Positions 2,310-17,523 of a stretch of 64,000 nucleotides of DNA are shown here, piece by piece. The notes under the pieces are model-generated. The model did no database searches. It had not been told where the DNA came from and saw only the letters and a list, made by a program, of their open reading frames with translations. The stretch is taken from the sequence record MW021758.1; one strand, 5' to 3'. The translations under genes were made by a program, and so were the position numbers. Every line of letters begins with the position of its first letter. Position 1 is the stretch's first letter.

Positions 2310-2322
2310 AGCAACTATGCGA

Positions 2323-2889
2323 TTAATTACCGCCTTGTTCAGTGACGATGAACTTATCGTTCTCGGTCGTAATCGCTTTACCAGATTCGGTAAGGATTGC
2401 GCCGCGTGGCATTTTCATGCCGCCGGTGATGGTGATGTCCAGGTTACCGCTCCAGACGTGGGAGTTGTAATCCGTACCTGCTTTAGTCTGTACAGTGACG
2501 ACCGCAGTTTCGCCTTCCGGGATGAACGGCAGAAGTTCAGTTGCGTTAGCTACGTCAACTTCATCGATGTAGATTTTGTATTTGGTCTGAATCAGCGGCA
2601 GCAGATCCGTTACGGTGTTGGCTGTCTCTGGCAGGATCAGGGAAGGGCCCTGGGCGCCCAGCAGTTTGTTCAGATCGATACGGGTATACGTGAACACACG
2701 TTGACCGCTATAAGGGCTACGACCGGTTACAGGAACGCTCACGCGTTCTTCAGTACCAGGAACAGTTGCGCCTTTAACGTCGCCAAACGTCAGGTAGCTG
2801 GCGTTCAGTGCTGGGGTCACGTTGTTCTGTACAGTGATGAGATCAGCAAGGATCTCAAATTTAGGGCGTCCGAATAACTCAACGTACAT
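2323..2889 (-). CDS. Virion structural protein, possible tailspike adaptor (188 aa)
   Basis: SPYSGQRVFTYTRIDLNKLLG motif resembles the paralogous baseplate-type domain also seen at 55015-58729; C-terminal ILTESGKAITTENDKFIVTE repeat. Confidence 0.55.
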   Translation of the reverse strand: MYVELFGRPKFEILADLITVQNNVTPALNASYLTFGDVKGATVPGTEERVSVPVTGRSPYSGQRVFTYTRIDLNKLLGAQGPSLILPETANTVTDLLPLIQTKYKIYIDEVDVANATELLPFIPEGETAVVTVQTKAGTDYNSHVWSGNLDITITGGMKMPRGAILTESGKAITTENDKFIVTEQGGN

Positions 2890-2933
2890 GGGTAAACTCC
2901 ATTGAAATAAAACTTTTAGTTCAGCTCATAGAA

Positions 2934-3500
2934 TTAACAGATGCCAAACAAGTCTTCGAATGCTTTCTTAGGGAAGCTTAAAGGACGGGTCTGTTTAGCT
3001 TTGACTTTCCCGTAAGCCGATATATAACAAGTACCCAATAAAGAAGAGTCAGGGCGCTCCAGTGCAACGAACAATACGTTATCGCTACGATAACCGTATA
3101 CGTCGTAGATCTCATCTTTATTTTTTGCCGCTTTCCCTGCCAGATATTTAAAGCCAGGGAACAGATCTTCTACTGCACGCCCAAACTCACTGTCCGTTTT
3201 CAAGTTGGGGATCTCGCGGTACTCACCTTCAGTAATACGTCGATTGGTCAGACAGAGTCTTCGGGTAGGTTCCATCATCTGCCGAGGTGTATGCATGAAT
3301 AACTCATGTACCACATGGGTCAGTTGACTTACGTTGGTGTCGTATAACTCACACAAAGGTTTGAGTGTTTCCGACATACGCAAATGTTCCATGAACAGGA
3401 CAGGATTAACTTTAATCGTATCCTTCAAACGTTCACGTTCTTCATTTACCTTCCGCTTCTCCGTTCCCGGTTCTCCGGGTCGACGAGTGGTGACTGCCAT
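2934..3500 (-). CDS. Hypothetical protein (188 aa)
   Basis: ORF tiles with neighbours on the minus strand; no recognised motif. Confidence 0.6.
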   Translation of the reverse strand: MAVTTRRPGEPGTEKRKVNEERERLKDTIKVNPVLFMEHLRMSETLKPLCELYDTNVSQLTHVVHELFMHTPRQMMEPTRRLCLTNRRITEGEYREIPNLKTDSEFGRAVEDLFPGFKYLAGKAAKNKDEIYDVYGYRSDNVLFVALERPDSSLLGTCYISAYGKVKAKQTRPLSFPKKAFEDLFGIC

Positions 3501-3871
3501 TGTGGTTCTCCGCGATCAATAAAGAGTATCCCTTCTTTTTCACATAGTTTACGAAGGGGTCTTTTCAGCAAGTGGCGATGGCAGAACTTACCATGTCCGC
3601 AGTAGCAGGTTAATGCAATCCGTCGCTGTCTAATCAACCACTCGAAAGGCTCAGGGTCTTTCCTGTAGCGTTGTCGTAATAGTCGATAGTAAATCTCACC
3701 ATATTCCCTGGAGTTAATTAAGCCTTGCTTATACGGATAGAGCAGTTCGGCCGATGGTGCAAATACTCTGTCGCCAGATTTCAGAGTAATGTCATAGAAG
3801 AGGACGTCGCTATTATGCCATTCTCTCCAATCCTGAATTCTTCCTGTAAAAACTTCTAATATCTGAGTCAT
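3446..3871 (-). CDS. DUF488-like protein (141 aa)
   Basis: IALTCYCGHGKFCHRHLL Cys/His motif and FAPSAELL segment; GGAGG Shine-Dalgarno upstream. Confidence 0.6.
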   Translation of the reverse strand: MTQILEVFTGRIQDWREWHNSDVLFYDITLKSGDRVFAPSAELLYPYKQGLINSREYGEIYYRLLRQRYRKDPEPFEWLIRQRRIALTCYCGHGKFCHRHLLKRPLRKLCEKEGILFIDRGEPQWQSPLVDPENRERRSGR

Positions 3872-9185: not shown

Positions 9186-10667
9186 TTACGCGGTGACGTC
9201 GAACTGGGATACCAGCCATTTAGCCAGGTAGATAACAGCTGCACGATAAGCTGCGTACTCCGGCTTTTCTTCGCCCTCTTCGATATCGCGTTCGATGATA
9301 TCGATGATGGAACGGGTATCAATGAAGTTAAAGATACCGGTGGTGGCGATGTTCTTAACCAGGTAGAACAGGTTAGGTACGCCGGCCATGTCCCAATCGC
9401 CATAAGCGTTCAGGCCACTTGCGTTCAGGTTATCGAGGATAGCTTTAACGCGGGCGGTACGATCGTAGCCGTCTGGCAGATAATCGTTCGGCAGCGCTTG
9501 GAGTTTCTGTTCGATAACCGGGGCGATGATATTTTTCAGGCGCAGCTGGAATCCTTTCTCAACGAAGTCGTTGCGAGACTTATCCAGTTGTTCCCACAGG
9601 CCTTGATAGAAACGTGCGTTGGTGATGAAGGACTGCAAGTCCATCTTAGCACCACGAGGATCCATCATGCCGCCAATGATGATTTCAGGAGTAACGTCCT
9701 GAGCCAGGGCATTGGTGTAAACGATTTCGTTAACCAGGATACGCGCTTTGCTCGCATCGGTAACGATACCGCGCTGGTCCGCCCAACGGATGATCAGACG
9801 TTGACGTTTAACGTCGTCAGTGAAGTTACGGATCAGGTTTTGGATCTGTTGACCCATGGAGAGTTTCATCCCCTGGATAACGCCTTTGTACTGATCCAGC
9901 GACATGCCGGTGCCTGGGATTACGTTGTCCATGAAGCTATCGATCAGGAAATACCCAACGATGGCCAGGTCAACGATACCTGGGTTAACCAGAGAGAAGC
10001 GATAGCCGTCGCCAGACTTGACGATCATGTTGTAGATGCCGCGAGAGACTTCGTCGTTGGCCTGGTTAAAGGTACCGCGGAAGAAGGCTTCGTACATTTC
10101 CACAATGCGGCTGTGGCCGTATTTAGCGATGGTGGCTGCCATTGCATCGTCCAGCTCAGGTAAACCGGTACGCAGGGCATTGATGAGCTCTGCATCGGTC
10201 TTAGCCGGGGCGTCTTTGATCAGACGAGCAAAAGGTACGTTACTGTTCATTTTACCGAACAGTTCAGCAACTACTGGCAGGGTGCTCAGGTCACCGATAC
10301 CGACAGGAACAATTTCGTATTCCAGTGGTTCAGATTCCTGAACTTTATCCATCAGGGTCGCAGAGGTTTCAGTGATGAACGGGACGACAACGTCACGTAC
10401 ATATTTGATCTGACGAACCAGAGCGGGGCCGACGGTAGCAACGACGTCAGAGATTGCTGCGTCGTGGAGATCGAACCCGTCAGCTTCACGCGCTGAGGCA
10501 ACGATCATTTCTTGGGCGAAGGATTCCAGCGAAGGGCCTTCGGTCTGAAGAACAGGTGCCGAGTTAACGACAGCTTCTTCCAGGATAGAGTTAGGGCGAG
10601 GAGTTACGCAAGCACATTCGTTGCTTACAATCATCTGAGCCAGTTCTACTGATTTATTACTGAGCAT
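9186..10667 (-). CDS. Virion head/ejection protein, likely protease-processed (493 aa)
   Basis: Conserved position between RNAP beta and the protease; N-terminal PSLES putative S-x-E cleavage site. Confidence 0.6.
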   Translation of the reverse strand: MLSNKSVELAQMIVSNECACVTPRPNSILEEAVVNSAPVLQTEGPSLESFAQEMIVASAREADGFDLHDAAISDVVATVGPALVRQIKYVRDVVVPFITETSATLMDKVQESEPLEYEIVPVGIGDLSTLPVVAELFGKMNSNVPFARLIKDAPAKTDAELINALRTGLPELDDAMAATIAKYGHSRIVEMYEAFFRGTFNQANDEVSRGIYNMIVKSGDGYRFSLVNPGIVDLAIVGYFLIDSFMDNVIPGTGMSLDQYKGVIQGMKLSMGQQIQNLIRNFTDDVKRQRLIIRWADQRGIVTDASKARILVNEIVYTNALAQDVTPEIIIGGMMDPRGAKMDLQSFITNARFYQGLWEQLDKSRNDFVEKGFQLRLKNIIAPVIEQKLQALPNDYLPDGYDRTARVKAILDNLNASGLNAYGDWDMAGVPNLFYLVKNIATTGIFNFIDTRSIIDIIERDIEEGEEKPEYAAYRAAVIYLAKWLVSQFDVTA

Positions 10668-10852
10668 TACGCAATCCCCTGGTCAATTTTCTGATTACGG
10701 ACTTCGCTAGCAATTGCAGCGGCCAAGTCTTCCTCAACGTTAGCGCCTTCTGGGATAATGAAGTCTTCGCTTTTCGCGTTCTTCAGTACACGCTTCCCAG
10801 CCTCGAGGATATTCGCCAATGACAGGACGGTAACTGCCTGATTGTCGTTCAT
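10667..10852 (-). CDS. Small virion-associated protein (61 aa)
   Basis: Stop overlaps the start of the next gene (TAATG coupling); GAAGG RBS. Confidence 0.65.
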   Translation of the reverse strand: MNDNQAVTVLSLANILEAGKRVLKNAKSEDFIIPEGANVEEDLAAAIASEVRNQKIDQGIA

Positions 10853-10879
10853 GTTTTGAAACCTTCCATCAAAAAGTAA

Positions 10880-10903
10880 GCTGGGTAGGGGCCCCTACCC
10901 AGC
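10880..10903 (-). terminator. Perfect 24-bp palindrome / terminator-like hairpin after RNAP beta
   Basis: gctgggtagggg|cccctacccagc; short A-tract at 10871-10875. Confidence 0.55.
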
Positions 10904-10920
10904 GGCTACGTAACTACTGA

Positions 10921-12072
10921 CTACTCTTCGTTGTAAGCGTTTAGCATCGCAGTGGCAATGTGTTGGAGAAGGATGTTAACCATCCCCGACATCATCGCTG
11001 AGTTTACGATACGTGCGTTTACAGACTTGTACGAGAACTGGAGATCTACGTCCCATGGTTTATCGCCAGGAATCACTGGACCGACAGTACGGCACTTACC
11101 AGTGAACACCCCAGACACCACGGACTTTTTCTGGTTACCCACCACGATCTTGTCCCCGTCACCCATAGAGCGGTCATGGGTAATGTAGATACGAATCGCC
11201 ATCATATCAATCTCAATAGAGAGACCGTCCAATCGCGTAGGCGTGAAAATCTGCCCAGTCTTCGCTTCTGTACCACCCAAAGCCTTAGAAAGCTTGGCGC
11301 GTTGGTTATCGTAGTAATCCGCAATTTTCCGTAATGAAGGAGACATGTCTTCCTTCTCACCGAAATAGATTACCTCGATTTTCTCGATATCTCCTACATA
11401 CTTAGCACGCGGAGCTGGAGAACCCAAACGTTTCAATGCTTCCAAAGTGGACTCGTCGAACAAATCACTCGCAGAAGAAACCTCATCCTCAATGTAGCCG
11501 AGAACCGTTTCATTATCTACATGTTCGCCAACCGCTACCAGATTACGAATACCCTGGTTAAAGTTAACCAAGATAGTACGCGTATGGCTAGTCGGCGTGT
11601 GCAGACGTTTAGAGAGTGATTCGGAGATCAAACTCGCATCCTCAAAGGTCGAGTTGTTTTCCATCAGTGCGATGTTAGCCAGAGTACCTGACTTCCACAG
11701 CACCTGAGTCGGGTCACGCCAGTCGCGCTGGAAGAACCCAGGATGGTAACTTACGATCTCACCTTCTACTACTCGCTTACCCACTTCCAGTTCAGATACT
11801 ACGGCGTGTGGAACAACGTGACCAGTTACCACACCGAAGCGACGACCTAATTGGATACGCTCCTCACCTAATTTCTCATCGTCGTATTTTACGACCATGT
11901 AGTTAGGGCCTTTCTCGGTCACTACCCCTGGGCCTTTAGCCGCGGTAGCGAAGGTATCGTCAACACGGTGAGCCATGACTTGCTCGTACCCAGTACGGAT
12001 AGGAGAAACCATTGCGTCACTAGAAGCGATAACGTGAGATTGCTGAATAGAGATGAAACTTACTCGCTTTGG
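10921..12072 (-). CDS. rpoB: Virion RNAP beta subunit (phiKZ gp178-like), exon 2 (383 aa)
   Basis: PKRVSFISIQQSH (RpoB ANRALMGANMQRQ), RTGYE, NSTFEDASLIS (GYNFEDSILVS) and GDKIVVGNQKKSVV (GDKMAGRHGNKGVI). The ORF-track start at 12111 lies inside the intron. Confidence 0.9.
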   Translation of the reverse strand, partial: PKRVSFISIQQSHVIASSDAMVSPIRTGYEQVMAHRVDDTFATAAKGPGVVTEKGPNYMVVKYDDEKLGEERIQLGRRFGVVTGHVVPHAVVSELEVGKRVVEGEIVSYHPGFFQRDWRDPTQVLWKSGTLANIALMENNSTFEDASLISESLSKRLHTPTSHTRTILVNFNQGIRNLVAVGEHVDNETVLGYIEDEVSSASDLFDESTLEALKRLGSPAPRAKYVGDIEKIEVIYFGEKEDMSPSLRKIADYYDNQRAKLSKALGGTEAKTGQIFTPTRLDGLSIEIDMMAIRIYITHDRSMGDGDKIVVGNQKKSVVSGVFTGKCRTVGPVIPGDKPWDVDLQFSYKSVNARIVNSAMMSGMVNILLQHIATAMLNAYNEE

Positions 12073-12496
12073 TCTAGTCGTCAATGAATTCGCTAAATTC
12101 ACCTGCGGCATTACCCGCTACCCTAGCTGTTAGCTAGTTCAGGAGACTATATCATCGCCCTATTCTTTAGGGCGCTCTCTATTTCGACCCTCGCTCGAGT
12201 GGTCTACTCTACTCCGTTACATGCTACACATCCGTGTCATGTCGTTTCGATAGTCGTTGAACGTTCCCCGTGGTATCTACGATACGGTAGAGGCTTCGCT
12301 GCGAAAGATCGGATTGGTTACCGAACTCGATTCCCCATTGTACATCCACACACTTTTTAGAGCATTCACGTTTGTCCTTTCGAACTCCGTTGTAGCAGTG
12401 TGGCTTTAGTGGGTTCCCGCAATTAAGAGAGTTATTCGACTGGGGTTACTCCCAGAAGCGACCCGTACTTCAGTTAGTGAACTAAAGTAAATATTG
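12073..12496 (-). ncRNA. Group I self-splicing intron, IA2-like, ORF-less, 424 nt
   Basis: Minus strand: P element UUAAUUGCGGGAA; R UUCAACGACUA; S GAUGAUAUAGUCU; P7 A(C)GACUA/UAGUCU; P3 CUCUCU/AGAGAG; P8 CGCCCUA/UAGGGCG; P7.1 and P7.2 hairpins; P1 CGAU|C/GGUCG with a U-G pair at the 5' splice site. Removal restores the YDD-PKR motif. Confidence 0.92.
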
Positions 12497-15400
12497 ATCG
12501 TCGTATGTCGCAAATGGAGCTACGAGCGCTGACGTACTCAGAAGGTTACCGACACCGTTCTTCGGATCCGGATCAACAGTTGGAACTGCTGTACCACGAA
12601 GCGAGGTCAGGTTAGGGTTAGCGGTAAGGAATGTGTTAATCCCTACGTCACCGTTATCCACCGATGCTTCTGCACGAATACCGATATCCGATTTATGGAA
12701 CGCACGAGTACGGCGAACCATTGCACGTTTAGACCGACCGCCTGTACCAGAGTAAGTTACGTTCTCTTTCTCTTTAAGGTTGTGGATTGGGTTAGAATCC
12801 TCAACGATGGCGACGGATGGATCACGCTGGATTGCCGCCAATACTTCAAACGGCGGGATATCGATAGTTGCACGGGAACTAACAGGCTGACTGGCGTAAG
12901 AACGATACGCGTTGGACAAAGTACGGTAGACTTCGCCAGGCATACGTTCGTAACCACGGAACAGAGAACCGTCTGAGGAAATATCACTCGGATAGTTATC
13001 GGTCACCAGATAGAAAGCTGCCTTGATGAACAGGTCGTTCAACTCGGTCGGTTCTTTCATATCGCGCAGTACGTCAATAGCGATAGGATCTAAGAACAAC
13101 GCATTGATGTTGTCGATCTCACGCACGTAACGCGCACTCAGGTTAGCCATACCGAACAGCAGGTTAAAGGTGTCCGGATTGTCCAGCTCTTGTACAGAGA
13201 AGCTACGGAGGTATTTCTTCCAACGTTGGAGGGAAGCCCAAATCAGACTACTATTACCACCGTGGACAGGGAAGCGCCAAACTTCATCAGCAAAGACTAA
13301 CTCGAACGTACCTGGGACAGGCTCGACGCGAGTGCCTTTAACACGACGCTCTGGTTTTACTGGGAGAGTGTTCATCAACTTAGTGATGCCCATGTGATAC
13401 ATGAGGATCGCAGCCATCGGAATCTCTTCGCCCATGATCTTAACGATCACTTGCTCAACCGGAAGTTTCTCATCAGGTAATCCCAACATCTCGTTGATAG
13501 AACCTAACACATTACCTTTAGCGTCGACGAGCTTACCTTCATTATTCATGAAGATGAACTCTTTACCTTTGCGACCAACTGGAACCCAGCCCTTCGCCTT
13601 AGCTGCCACTACGACGTCTTCCGTGTAGTTATTCGCCAGGTTAGGGTAGTCGAATGTAAACAGGATTCCATTCAGTACAAAGGAGACGAACTCTTTTGCC
13701 AATGCGGAATATTCGCGCGGTACGTCCTGATCTTCCGTGAATGTATTGCCCAGTACCAAATCGGTAACGGTAGGGACGTCGAGCTGACTAGACCTTTCGA
13801 TCAGGTCAACGAGGACATGGCCCAAATCTTCACTTGCGCGCGAAGAGCGCTCAACGAAGAGTTTACCGTAGTACGTAGACAACGCCACGATGCTCGGAGA
13901 GATCTTACGGATTGGTTTATCGAACTTAAGTTTACGCATGAAGTACTTAGTGCCATTCACGCGATACTTACCATTCTTATCCACTGCCGGTAATTGGAAG
14001 CGGATAGTAGAAGGACTACCATAGACCGGCACGACTTTAATCGTGTAGTCGTAGAGGTCGTTCAACGCATCGGATTTCTTCTCGACGCGATAATCCGTAA
14101 TTGCCAGACCTGCCTTCTGTAAACTGACGACCATGTTTGCAACATCTTTCTGGAAGACATTACTGATGTAATCTTGGTCGTAGTTCAGTAAGGTAGACTT
14201 CAACATGGTCTTATCGACCACGTGAGGGATGTCCGGAATCTCTTTCGCTTTAAAGTCCCACAGTTGCTCGTGAGGGATCTTCATGAAGTCTTCCAGTGTA
14301 CCTTCACCGAATGGTGCTTTGATACTCTTGAAGCTGTTAGCGAGGCGTACATGACGTTTAAACTCGTTACCCGAGATAAGTCCTTTACTCAGGAGATCAC
14401 GAGAACGTTTTTCAACCGGTTTGATCAACGGGTTGTTGGTATCGATGACTTCCTCTTCCGATTTACCCGGAGTAGGCTTGTCTACTACAACAGTCGTTTC
14501 CTCTGGCTGGAAACTCGTGGTCGCCGTGACGTCGGTATTTTGAATTGGCGTTTCGCTGCGCTTAGTTGCCAAAATCTCACGAGGAGTTTTGGTTACACGC
14601 TGAGCGCTACGACGAAGACGTGCGATGTCACTTTCGCCTTTGTCGCCAACGCTGACATCTACATTCGGGTCGCCAGGTTGTGGTTCAGGGACTTTAATGT
14701 CACTGACTTCGGCTTCACCTGTTTCTACAACTTCTTCTTCAACAGTGATTTTGTCGGATACCGAAGTCGTCGTTACGATGTTCTGCAAGTAGCGATCCAT
14801 CGTCTGAGACATTGAACCGAAACCGATACCGCGCTCGTTCTCTTCCGACTTAACCCATTGGTCAAGTTTATCGAAGGAGAGCAGGCTGAACTTACCGTTA
14901 CGCATGACAACCAGGTTAAGGTTCTTCAATGCATTACTTGGGATGGAACCCAGGATGGATTCATCGCGGTTCTCTGACATCCACTTCCAAAGATCAGAAA
15001 GGAACAGAGACGCGTCATCTTGGAAGTAACCCAGGCGAATACGGTTCATCGACTCAACTGCTACGATCGGATCGTCATCGCCCATTGAGAGTGAAGATTC
15101 ATCGAAGGACTCGAACGCAGGTTCATCACCCCAACCTAACGCACTGGCATCAAACGCCTCGTTGGAGAACGCAGTACCCTGGCCAGTCATGATACCGGGA
15201 TAGAGGTTATCGTAGTACCGTGCGATAGTATCGCCTTGTTGGCTCTGCAGATTACTTTGCTGAGCCTGACGCGCATCTTGAATTACATCGTAGGCTTCAA
15301 CCGAGACGTTCAGGTATTGACGTGACGGTAATACATCCGGCAGAGTAAGGAAGAGGAACTGGGGACGACTAGACTGTTCGCCGAAATATTTGACACGGTC

Positions 15401-15856
15401 AGCAAACGTCTTCATCAGGTTTTGGAAACGGAACCACCGGGCCATTGGGATCGGTTGGTATTTCCATTGCATCGGGATCAAAGCGTAGTTAACAACGATT
15501 GCAGTTTGACGATCGTCTAACGCTCTGGCGATGTCTGTAACGCGTCTGTAGCGACGATTACGAATCAGCCACTGGCGCTTCAGGTTCTCTACGTTAAAGG
15601 CGCCACGACGGCGAGGAGCGCCTTCATGGGAGGTCATATCGGTAACCTGGTCTACGTAGGGACGAAGACGTTCATTGATAATCGGGAAGAACTGATCGTC
15701 CGGGCCTAAATCGGAAACCGACTGAGGCAGGTAGTGAACGATCGCTCCACGAGGGAGTTTGAAGTTCTCCAGATTAAACAGTTTCGGGGTAGTTAACCCC
15801 GAAGTAGAACGTATACCGAATCGTTGATAGAGTTCGGGATAAGTAATGTTACTCAT
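12497..15856 (-). CDS. rpoB: Virion RNAP beta subunit (phiKZ gp178-like), exon 1 (1120 aa; spliced product about 1503 aa)
   Basis: GKYRVNGTKYFMRKL (RpoB GTFIINGTERV), VTYSGTGGRSKRAM, RAFHKSDIG and PFATYDD (PFLEHDD); ATG at 15856 has GGAG at usable spacing. Confidence 0.9.
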
Positions 15857-15885
15857 TGTCAGAGACACTCCTAAGAGTAATTAAT

Positions 15886-17523
15886 TTATTTCGGCCCGCC
15901 AGTGATATTACGGAGTACCAAGTCGAGGTTATCTACGTCAGCAGAAAGTGCCAGGCTACCTCGAGCAGATACGTACCACTCTTTCTTACTCTTGATGAGT
16001 TCGTACTCTTCCAGAGAATCACGACCGTACACTGCAGTGAAAGTACAACGGTCACCGTCATAGTCCGCGCCCAGCGGGGCGATACGTGACGGGTGTGGAC
16101 TGAGGGTCATATAGTGAGTCGCTTTTTGCGACTGGTCTGGGAACTCATTGGCAATGAAGTCCGGACCAAGGCGATGCCAGCTTTCGTCCAACTCAGGGAG
16201 AGATTGCGTCTTCTGAGTTGTCTTACAATAGATGTTTCCTATGTAAGTAGAGCCTGGGCCAGTTACCGGATAACGGGTAACGATACCGGCCATTTTGTGC
16301 CACTCACGATAACCGCTCAGATAATAAAGAGAGGTCATGTTAATAGGGTAGACATACTTTTTGTCGAACCCTTGAGGTAGCTCATTAATATCTGCAAAGA
16401 AACGCCAACCTTGTGGGCCAGCATAAAGCAGACCAAGGTAGTAGCCATCGACCATAATTGGACGCTGACGGAAACCTAGGATCTTGTACCGGGTAATCTC
16501 TGCATCGATACCCTCTTTAGTCGTCCAACGAGTGACGGACTCTGGAGAAGGTTTTACGAATACTGCGCGCAGTGTCTTAGGATCGGTCAAGCGAACTTCA
16601 TCTTCGGTGTTACCGGAGAATACCTGGCCAACCCAACCGTTACGAATGAAGTAACGTGTCTTAGGAAGTACTGCTTTAATTACTTGATACAGACCGAGCT
16701 GGACGTCGTTGATGACTGGAGTACGGTTAGAGCCCAGGCGATCAGTACCTACGTTCATCGGCGTGATTACGTTAGCGGTACCGTTCAGGATTTTACGAGA
16801 TGCCCACTTGGACAACGCAAACCCCTTCTTGCCTTTAATCATGTTAAAGACGTACTCAAAGATCTCGTTGAAGTTACGTTGTAAACTCAGACGAGAATAG
16901 TTGATGATTGGGTCATTGCGGTTGGTGGATGAACCGGAGATACCGTTAGCGATGGAAATCATTGCACGGTAGAATTTGTTGATCTCGTCTTCTGAGGTTC
17001 TTCCTGTGCCCGGTTCAACAATCAGGTCACGTAAACCTGCCGGCATCACCAAGATGCGTTCGAGCATTGCTTTATTACGGTTTTCGTTAATCAAGCGAAC
17101 GCGAAGGTTACGGATCTCAGAATCGCCTTCCTCTATAACGAGGTTAGGGAAATGTTTAACGAAGAAAGCAAAGCCTGTTTCACCAACCGTCTCATCGGCT
17201 GGGATGAAGTCTTTTTTCTCTTCGTCAAATATCGCGTAACGAGTACCTTCGATAATTTCGGTATAGAGACGTTTCAATGTCCCCAAACGTTTGTAAATCA
17301 AAGGGTGGAAAATGGACGTGTTTAAATTAATATAGCTGAATCTTCCGTCACGTTCTGGGCTACCTAGCGTACCGTAAGTCTCTACGCTAAACAAACCGTC
17401 CCGGTTGAAGTTACGTGTGCCCGTTTCGAAAATTTCAGTTGTGGTCGTTGCTCGCATGGAACGAATAAGTTCTGGAGTAACGTCCATAATGAAAATGTTA
17501 AAAGGCATTTCATTGAGACGCAT
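15886..17523 (-). CDS. rpoC: Virion RNAP beta' subunit, N-terminal/catalytic part (phiKZ gp180-like) (545 aa)
   Basis: DGLFSVETYG; VMPAGLRD; catalytic LGADYDGD (NADFDGD) motif; divergent from the tape measure gene as in phiKZ. Confidence 0.92.
   Translation of the reverse strand: MRLNEMPFNIFIMDVTPELIRSMRATTTTEIFETGTRNFNRDGLFSVETYGTLGSPERDGRFSYINLNTSIFHPLIYKRLGTLKRLYTEIIEGTRYAIFDEEKKDFIPADETVGETGFAFFVKHFPNLVIEEGDSEIRNLRVRLINENRNKAMLERILVMPAGLRDLIVEPGTGRTSEDEINKFYRAMISIANGISGSSTNRNDPIINYSRLSLQRNFNEIFEYVFNMIKGKKGFALSKWASRKILNGTANVITPMNVGTDRLGSNRTPVINDVQLGLYQVIKAVLPKTRYFIRNGWVGQVFSGNTEDEVRLTDPKTLRAVFVKPSPESVTRWTTKEGIDAEITRYKILGFRQRPIMVDGYYLGLLYAGPQGWRFFADINELPQGFDKKYVYPINMTSLYYLSGYREWHKMAGIVTRYPVTGPGSTYIGNIYCKTTQKTQSLPELDESWHRLGPDFIANEFPDQSQKATHYMTLSPHPSRIAPLGADYDGDRCTFTAVYGRDSLEEYELIKSKKEWYVSARGSLALSADVDNLDLVLRNITGGPK

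Follow-up and report, generated by a model that had tools for sequence, protein, structure and literature searches.

The terminal G of group I introns (omega-G) is treated as a universal rule, and it has been built as such both into the tools that find introns and into those used for the design of circular RNA. To our knowledge only two natural exceptions to omega-G are known, neither of them convenient experimentally. The ND5-717 intron of sea anemones and corallimorpharians is an omega-A intron, the flanking exons of which are perfectly ligated in vivo (PMC8146996; PMC6545197), and these two papers bear out what the first-pass annotation of the DNA discussed here had stated, namely that omega-A is very rare and has a precedent in the coral ND5 intron. 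The intron Cbu.L1917 in the 23S rRNA of Coxiella burnetii is described as one that 'lacks the canonical omegaG' (Raghavan et al. 2007, J Bacteriol 189:6572). Our search of the literature for an omega-A group I intron in a phage found no report. In phage PhiPA3 the gp210 intron interrupts the gene for the beta subunit of the virion RNA polymerase, of which gp211 and gp209 are the two halves (PMC11620839).

The locus described here lies in the corresponding gene of a Serratia jumbo phage. Our preferred reading, to which we assign a probability of roughly 0.7, is that the gene carries a group I intron that works as a ribozyme, belongs to the phage IA type along with its relatives in Twort, phiKZ and PhiPA3, occupies the known homing site directly after two aspartates, has no endonuclease ORF and has A as its last nucleotide. 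A natural omega-A intron, as predicted here for a phage, is rare and has precedents. The intron is small and resides in a cultivable phage of a tractable host, and its relatives differ at the 3' end while sharing the guanosine pocket, the guide and the exons.

The interrupted polymerase gene and its junction

The window, by which we mean the whole stretch of 64,000 nucleotides that was analysed, is a 100% match, with the same coordinates, to Serratia phage vB_SmaM_Yaphecito (MW021758.1), a 275-kb jumbo phage of the genus Moabitevirus, for which no mention was found in the papers searched. On the minus strand GenBank lists gp15 (15856..12482) and gp14 (12111..10921), each as 'virion-associated RNA polymerase subunit beta', and the record of phage BUCT660 likewise annotates two CDSs. 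By orthology, gp15 and gp14 are one interrupted virion RNA polymerase beta gene, with the following predicted parts (here and below, a slash in a sequence marks the splice site):

12497..15856, minus strand: exon 1, virion RNA polymerase beta-like subunit, annotated as gp15; ends ...APFATYDD, with GAU at 12499-12497
12073..12496, minus strand: predicted group I intron of 424 nt without a homing-endonuclease ORF; boundaries from intron-free alleles, family from Rfam RF00028
10921..12072, minus strand: exon 2, beginning PKRVSFISIQQ..., with the stop codon at 10923-10921; GenBank CDS gp14

Both annotated reading frames extend into the intron: the last four residues of gp15 (QYLL) are intron sequence, and the start of the gp14 CDS is an ATG inside the intron (12111-12109), the first 13 residues (MPQVNLANSLTTR) being again intron sequence. 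For exon 1 there is an alternative GTG start at 15868. Compared with PhiPA3, exon 1 is 34% identical to gp211 over its last 400 aa and exon 2 is 40% identical to gp209, in an alignment that starts at residue 2. Since sequence searches of Pfam and the PDB with the exons gave no match, the proteins being very divergent, the identity of the gene rests on its orthology to PhiPA3 gp211/gp209 and on the annotations of the records. Upstream lies gp16 (15886-17523), a gene that bears the label 'subunit alpha', yet it has the beta' catalytic motif ADYDGD and a weak match to Rpb1 domain 1.

On the minus strand the 5' boundary reads ...GCG ACA UAC GAC GAU up to position 12497 and then CAA UAU UUA CUU UAG, with a stop codon in frame five codons past the 5' splice site. 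At the 3' end we find at 12084..12064 the same letters, UUG ACG ACU AGA/CCA AAG CGA, that had been read at first pass. The junction was compared with five intron-free homologues, which range from ~64 to 99% in protein identity. In Moabite, the exons of which are 99% identical to those of the window, a single CDS of 1503 aa without an intron reads GAC GAU/CCG AAG CGU, corresponding to ATYDD/PKRVSF, and YDD/PKRV is also found in two long Logan contigs and in two Klebsiella jumbo phages (~64-65% protein identity), all of them intron-free. Because the intron-free homologues read YDD/PKRV, we place the junction at GAU/CCA, the insert at 12496..12073 (424 nt) and its last base at A12073. The earlier proposal that joining GAU to CCA restores DD-PK-R and puts the predicted 3' splice site after A12073 is thus backed by intron-free alleles.

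Two other registers were considered and rejected. A slide by 1 nt (GAUC/...AC/C) is the sole alternative that gives the same junction, but the intron would then end in C (omega-C) and the U.G pair at the 5' splice site would be lost. Similarly, if the 5' splice site were moved one base ahead and G12074 used at the 3' end, which would give DE-PKR, the U.G wobble would be lost.

The 424-nt intron is identical, with 0 differences, in Yaphecito (USA), BUCT660 (China) and three independent Logan assemblies, SRR29074712, SRR29074720 and SRR18178461, and the flanking exons of the assemblies that share it show 8-11 differences from the window over 1500 positions. Since five assemblies carry the identical intron, and with it the same base, A12073 is not a sequencing error, and an error at 12073-12074, which the first-pass annotation had named as the finding that would overturn its reading, is ruled out.

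Around the insertion site synonymous changes cluster, intron-bearing alleles reading ACA UAC GAC GAU/CCA AAG CGA GUA AGU and intron-free alleles ACG UAU GAC GAU/CCG AAG CGU GUG UCG. The changes flanking the site (12064-12072 and 12497-12508) include a switch between the serine codons AGU and UCG. This cluster looks like a co-conversion tract or, alternatively, like the outcome of selection for resistance to a homing endonuclease.

Family and fold of the intron

Exactly the same DD/ site is occupied by four other intron types, all of which are omega-G and all of which have an HNH-type endonuclease ORF in the P1 loop:

Kodama intron: 1682 nt, 3' end ...UUUCUG/CC
Totoro intron: 1683 nt, 3' end ...UUUCCG/CC
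2050HW, Haymo and ParM-25 intron: 1371 nt, 3' end ...UUUUCG/CC
PhiPA3 gp210 intron: 1352 nt, 3' end ...AUCUCG/AU

An alignment of homologous introns in related phages had been suggested at first pass as a check, and in it the window intron ends in A where the same-site introns all end in G. The close omega-G relatives with an identical G-binding P7, the mosaic structure of the intron and the in-frame G12067, discussed below, are points that were missing from that annotation. Insertion directly after the conserved DD of the beta subunit, which is a feature of mobile introns of the PhiPA3 gp210 type, is present in the window. An intron-encoded HNH endonuclease was looked for in the window intron and not found, the only ORFs on either strand being of 41-53 aa. 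Within the intron, two short antisense ORFs (53 and 50 aa) at 12199-12409 on the plus strand are most likely spurious.

At the gathering threshold Rfam gave no match in the whole 64-kb window. On relaxed criteria RF00028 was the sole match in the 64 kb (12506..12123, minus strand, E=7e-8), with 37.5 bits against a gathering score of 50, and the homologous introns scored 46.4, 49, 61.5, 67.8 and 82.6 bits against the same model; long insertions lower such a score. Within the family, alignments of ~70% are obtained with introns of phages Twort, phiKZ and AR9. The assignment to group I is retained despite the missing omega-G, because omega-G is near-universal and not absolute, as is apparent from the omega-A of ND5-717. 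The predicted elements, in 5' to 3' order of the intron except that the guide is given first, are as follows:

12459..12464, minus strand: internal guide sequence GGGUCG, intron positions 33-38; same guide in Kodama
12466..12489, minus strand: closed P1 extension hairpin of 10 bp with a 4-nt loop; in Kodama and Totoro a 1242-nt HNH endonuclease ORF is found there
12426..12431, minus strand: P3 5' strand, CUCUCU; CUUCCU in Kodama, two positions differing
12251..12257, minus strand: P7 5' strand, A(C)GACUA; identical in Kodama, Totoro, 2050HW and PhiPA3
12181..12250, minus strand: two extra hairpins between P7 and P3' (P7.1/P7.2-like); 75% similar to an intron in another Totoro polymerase gene
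12175..12180, minus strand: P3 3' strand, AGAGAG; AGGAAG in Kodama, both changes compensating those of the 5' strand
12156..12174, minus strand: P8 hairpin, 7 bp, from a local fold
12144..12149, minus strand: P7 3' strand, UAGUCU; C12145 pairs with G12255
12140..12142, minus strand: P9.0 5' strand, CUG, within J7/9; register compared with relatives
12083..12137, minus strand: P9, P9.1 and P9.2 hairpins, from local folds
12073..12082, minus strand: 3' tail, GACGACUAGA; UAG (12076-12074) would form P9.0 with CUG, with A12073 at the omega position

In this arrangement the guide pairs through GUCG with the exon sequence CGAU, forming a U.G wobble (U12497 with G35) at the 5' splice site; G34 has intron C1 as its partner, and in P10 the guide nucleotides G34 and G33 pair with C12072 and C12071 of exon 2. 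In P7 the guanosine-binding pair consists of G12255 and C12145. Extra hairpins between P7 and P3' are typical of subgroup IA.

Since the minimum-free-energy fold of the whole intron was uninformative (z = -1.5), the helices were assigned by homology and by local folds, and in the resulting structure, drawn by hand, P1, the P1 extension, P2, P3, P4, P7, the P7-P3' hairpins, P8, P9, P9.1 and P9.2 all pair. Over intron positions 1-249 the window and Kodama are 95% identical, and the 11 differences comprise one at position 52, two in P3 and eight in a single hairpin in which pairing is kept (GUUC-GAAA-GGAC against ACUG-GAAA-CGGU). The two changes in P3, from CUUCCU with AGGAAG in Kodama to CUCUCU with AGAGAG in the window, are exactly compensatory. 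The P3 compensation and the intact predicted core helices indicate selection on the RNA fold, the comparison with Kodama being the strongest evidence, and the ribozyme looks functional.

Selection on the fold bears directly on the arrangement that the GenBank annotation implies, in which there is no splicing and two polypeptides assemble, one ending ...YDDQYLL and the other being the product from the ATG at 12111 (MPQVNLANSLTTRPKR...). An ATG in frame with exon 2 does occur 13 codons ahead of it, preceded at 9 nt by a weak AGGG, and the polymerase subunits of jumbo phages are naturally split at other positions. However, a run of 13 codons without a stop would arise by chance in about half of all cases, the omega-G relatives have no such ATG start, and both the ATG and the AGGG sit within the P9 and P9.1 stems; moreover, a break between two polypeptides would hit the most conserved motif. 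With the compensated P3 and the intact core helices on the other side of the balance, we consider an unspliced, two-polypeptide enzyme highly improbable.

The nucleotide at the 3' splice site

The outcome of splicing was recomputed for every G near the 3' splice site. As the first-pass annotation had stated, G12074 gives a frameshift with an early stop, which falls after 17 codons, and the in-frame Gs insert two or three residues, namely TR for G12079 and TTR for G12082. To these is added G12067, absent from the earlier list, which is in frame and deletes PK, while G12091 and G12100, also in frame, give longer inserts. The DD-xx-R spacing is invariant in all the intron-free homologues examined, and we take the motif to correspond to D674-D675...R678 of E. 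coli RpoB. Of these residues D675 is named in the PhiPA3 paper (PMC11620839).

The omega-A register had been credited at first pass with a P10 of CC with GG and with a C-G pair in P9.0. Both pair, and P9.0 gains a U-A and a G.U pair in addition. P10, the guide and the exon are the same in Kodama, where a G marks the site fixed by the same exons. In PhiPA3 and 2050HW, positions 2-3 of J7/9 (GA) form P9.0 with UC, the two bases before omega; in the window CU pairs with AG, with a third, G.U, pair, only when omega is at position 424 (A12073). This argument from P9.0 is a modest one, since Kodama and Totoro make just one of the two pairs.

Splicing at one of the in-frame Gs beside the two aspartates, either at G12079 or G12082 with TR or TTR inserted or at the downstream G12067 with PK deleted, would leave omega canonical, as a G, and the reading frame intact. 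G12082 comes straight after the P9.2 stem, with U413 and U414 in a position where they could pair with A359 and A358, and DD-TT-R would formally preserve the DDxxR pattern. The homologues, however, do more than preserve a pattern: exactly two residues separate DD from R, with fixed spacing to QQ, in all the intron-free proteins down to ~64% identity and also in the PhiPA3 orthologue. Neither the P10 pairing nor the P9.0 register of the family is available to G12079, G12082 or G12067. Likewise, the tail after P9.2, which is UGACGACUAGA in the window (11 nt, the same length as UGAAGAUCUCG in PhiPA3) and 11-12 nt in the relatives, would shrink to only 1-4 nt with G12082 or G12079. We therefore regard splicing at these sites as unlikely. 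An omega at A12073, as predicted, fits the family register of P9.0, the P10 pairing, the tail length of PhiPA3 and the conserved protein motif.

A different objection is raised by G12074, which adjoins the expected site and would suit a pocket that is G-specific. Splicing mainly after G12074 would produce a +1 frameshift and a truncated product, such that few or no transcripts yield the full-length beta subunit and the allele is leaky or defective. To this reading, too, we give a low probability: in the G12074 register neither P10 nor P9.0 pairs, five assemblies, from phages that form plaques or are abundant, carry the allele without change, and the gene product, a subunit of the virion RNA polymerase, is needed for viable virions, as shown in work on PhiKZ (PMC11620839).

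A change favouring A, that is G-C to A-U in the G-binding pair of P7, was looked for and not found; the omega-G relatives have the same P7, with its bulged C, and the same J6/7 and J8/7 as the window intron. In the Tetrahymena intron a change of omega-G to A in combination with a G-C pocket strongly slows or impairs exon ligation. With the P7 pocket unchanged (G-C), poor binding of A is to be expected, and compared with the omega-G relatives the second step would probably lose in speed or in accuracy. P9.0 and P10 are of only 2-3 bp each and G12074 lies directly before A12073, with which it could compete for the guanosine pocket, and some mis-splicing at this neighbouring G is possible. A slow or protein-assisted reaction that could time RNAP production had been suggested at first pass; slow splicing is plausible on the grounds just given, whereas the idea of timing found no support.

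The reaction that we propose for the omega-A intron would begin with the attack of free guanosine after U12497, which forms the U.G wobble with the internal guide. The tail would be held by P9.0 (C355-G423, U356-A422, G357.U421) and by P10 (CC of exon 2 with GG of the guide), which together would place the bond after A12073 in the active site, and the exons would be ligated to GAU/CCA, restoring the conserved DD-PK-R. That a 424-nt ORF-free phage ribozyme ligates accurately after a terminal A with an unchanged pocket, its 3' site being chosen by P9.0 and P10 alone, has in our estimate slightly better than even odds. Were this the case, the natural omega-G sisters with identical P7, guide and exons would provide a matched pair on the tolerance for omega. 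A slow second step might then be affordable, the phage nucleus being thought to separate transcription from translation, and the ORF-less allele might protect the polymerase gene against HNH endonucleases that co-infecting relatives bring with them.

A separate feature of the tail is that its GACGAC (12073-12082) mimics the end of exon 1, GACGAU (12497-12502), with possible pairing between tail and guide (C417-G38, G418-C37, A419-U36, C420-G35, U421.G34). In the omega-G relatives the conserved tail GAAGAU is likewise similar to their exon ends, GACGAU or GAUGAU. The exon-like tail could be a competitor of P1, or it could be a relic of the origin of the intron.

Mosaic origin and comparison with known introns

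Similarity to Kodama is lost from ~12247 onward, that is from P7.1 to the intron end. In a blastn search of 50,697 phage records the P7.1-P8 part gave a 75% match to the intron in the beta'-like gene of Totoro, and the other matches for the 3' part were short and in Acinetobacter phages; no close donor was found in these records for the 3' 175 nt, the part from P9 to the tail having no match at all. No further copies or variants of the tail turned up when IMG/VR, JGI metagenomes and GTDB genomes were scanned for exact patterns, and no other N-terminal variants were found in the 90% protein cluster. At intron positions 110-126 the window has a hairpin of the Totoro type, and Kodama has the type of the Totoro beta' intron. 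On these alignments the intron is a mosaic, the first 249 nt being almost the same as in Kodama and Totoro and the last 175 nt coming from a more distant member of the family, the two joined at the conserved P7. It is evident that modules are exchanged among these introns, the probable route being recombination at the conserved P7.

The Totoro beta'-like polymerase gene is split in its catalytic motif, NCDFDG/D, by a second group I intron of this phage (ON287372.1, region 10648-15740, positions 2318-3727 of the region), which is 1410 nt long, omega-G, and has an HNH ORF in its 3' part. Its P7.1-P7.2 module and one P5 hairpin are common to the beta-gene introns, which shows that introns of different genes exchange modules.

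A stretch of 46 nt from P7.2 to P3' has an 83% match to unannotated DNA of the 41-kb Acinetobacter podophages APK44, Ab_02_KEN_01 and AB_SZL2; the matches in these podophages are probably unannotated group I introns.

At the position of the 1242-nt ORF the window has the 4-nt hairpin loop (12466-12489), the result either of a clean loss of the ORF or of a state without the ORF that is ancestral. Yaphecito and BUCT660, which are assigned to two different Moabitevirus species, have this ORF-less intron in identical form.

For annotation the locus is instructive in that the curated Rfam threshold misses the intron and that the Yaphecito and BUCT660 records split one polymerase gene in two.

Among described systems, ND5-717 of hexacorals has A as its last nucleotide, like the window intron; precise ligation in vivo belongs to ND5-717, whereas splicing in the window is predicted from sequence. 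In other respects the two differ, ND5-717 being mitochondrial, giant, gene-containing and in some species back-spliced, and unrelated in both sequence and host. Cbu.L1917, the last base of which is reportedly A, is described as a bacterial self-splicing group I intron, of the same class as that of the window, but located in an rRNA gene of a bacterium and not in a protein-coding gene of a phage. Of the Twort introns (subgroup IA2), for which a crystal structure is known, one aligns at ~70% over 162 nt with the 3' core of the family; like the window intron they have extra hairpins between P7 and P3', but they are omega-G and reside in other genes.

The introns of Kodama and Totoro and of 2050HW, Haymo and ParM-25 share with the window the genus, the site and nearly identical exons, but their last base is G and their P1 loops contain an endonuclease ORF. 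Kodama is 95% identical in the first 249 nt, with an identical guide and P7, but from P7.1 onward all of these introns are only distant relatives. PhiPA3 gp210, finally, interrupts an orthologous gene (34-40% identity) directly after the two conserved aspartates, and it differs in having an HNH ORF, in ending in G (..GAUCUCG/AUG) and in its conserved tail UGAAGAU, whereas the window intron has no ORF, another tail and another J7/9. With P7, J8/7 and the P9.2 loop motifs in common, gp210 and the window intron belong to one ribozyme family.
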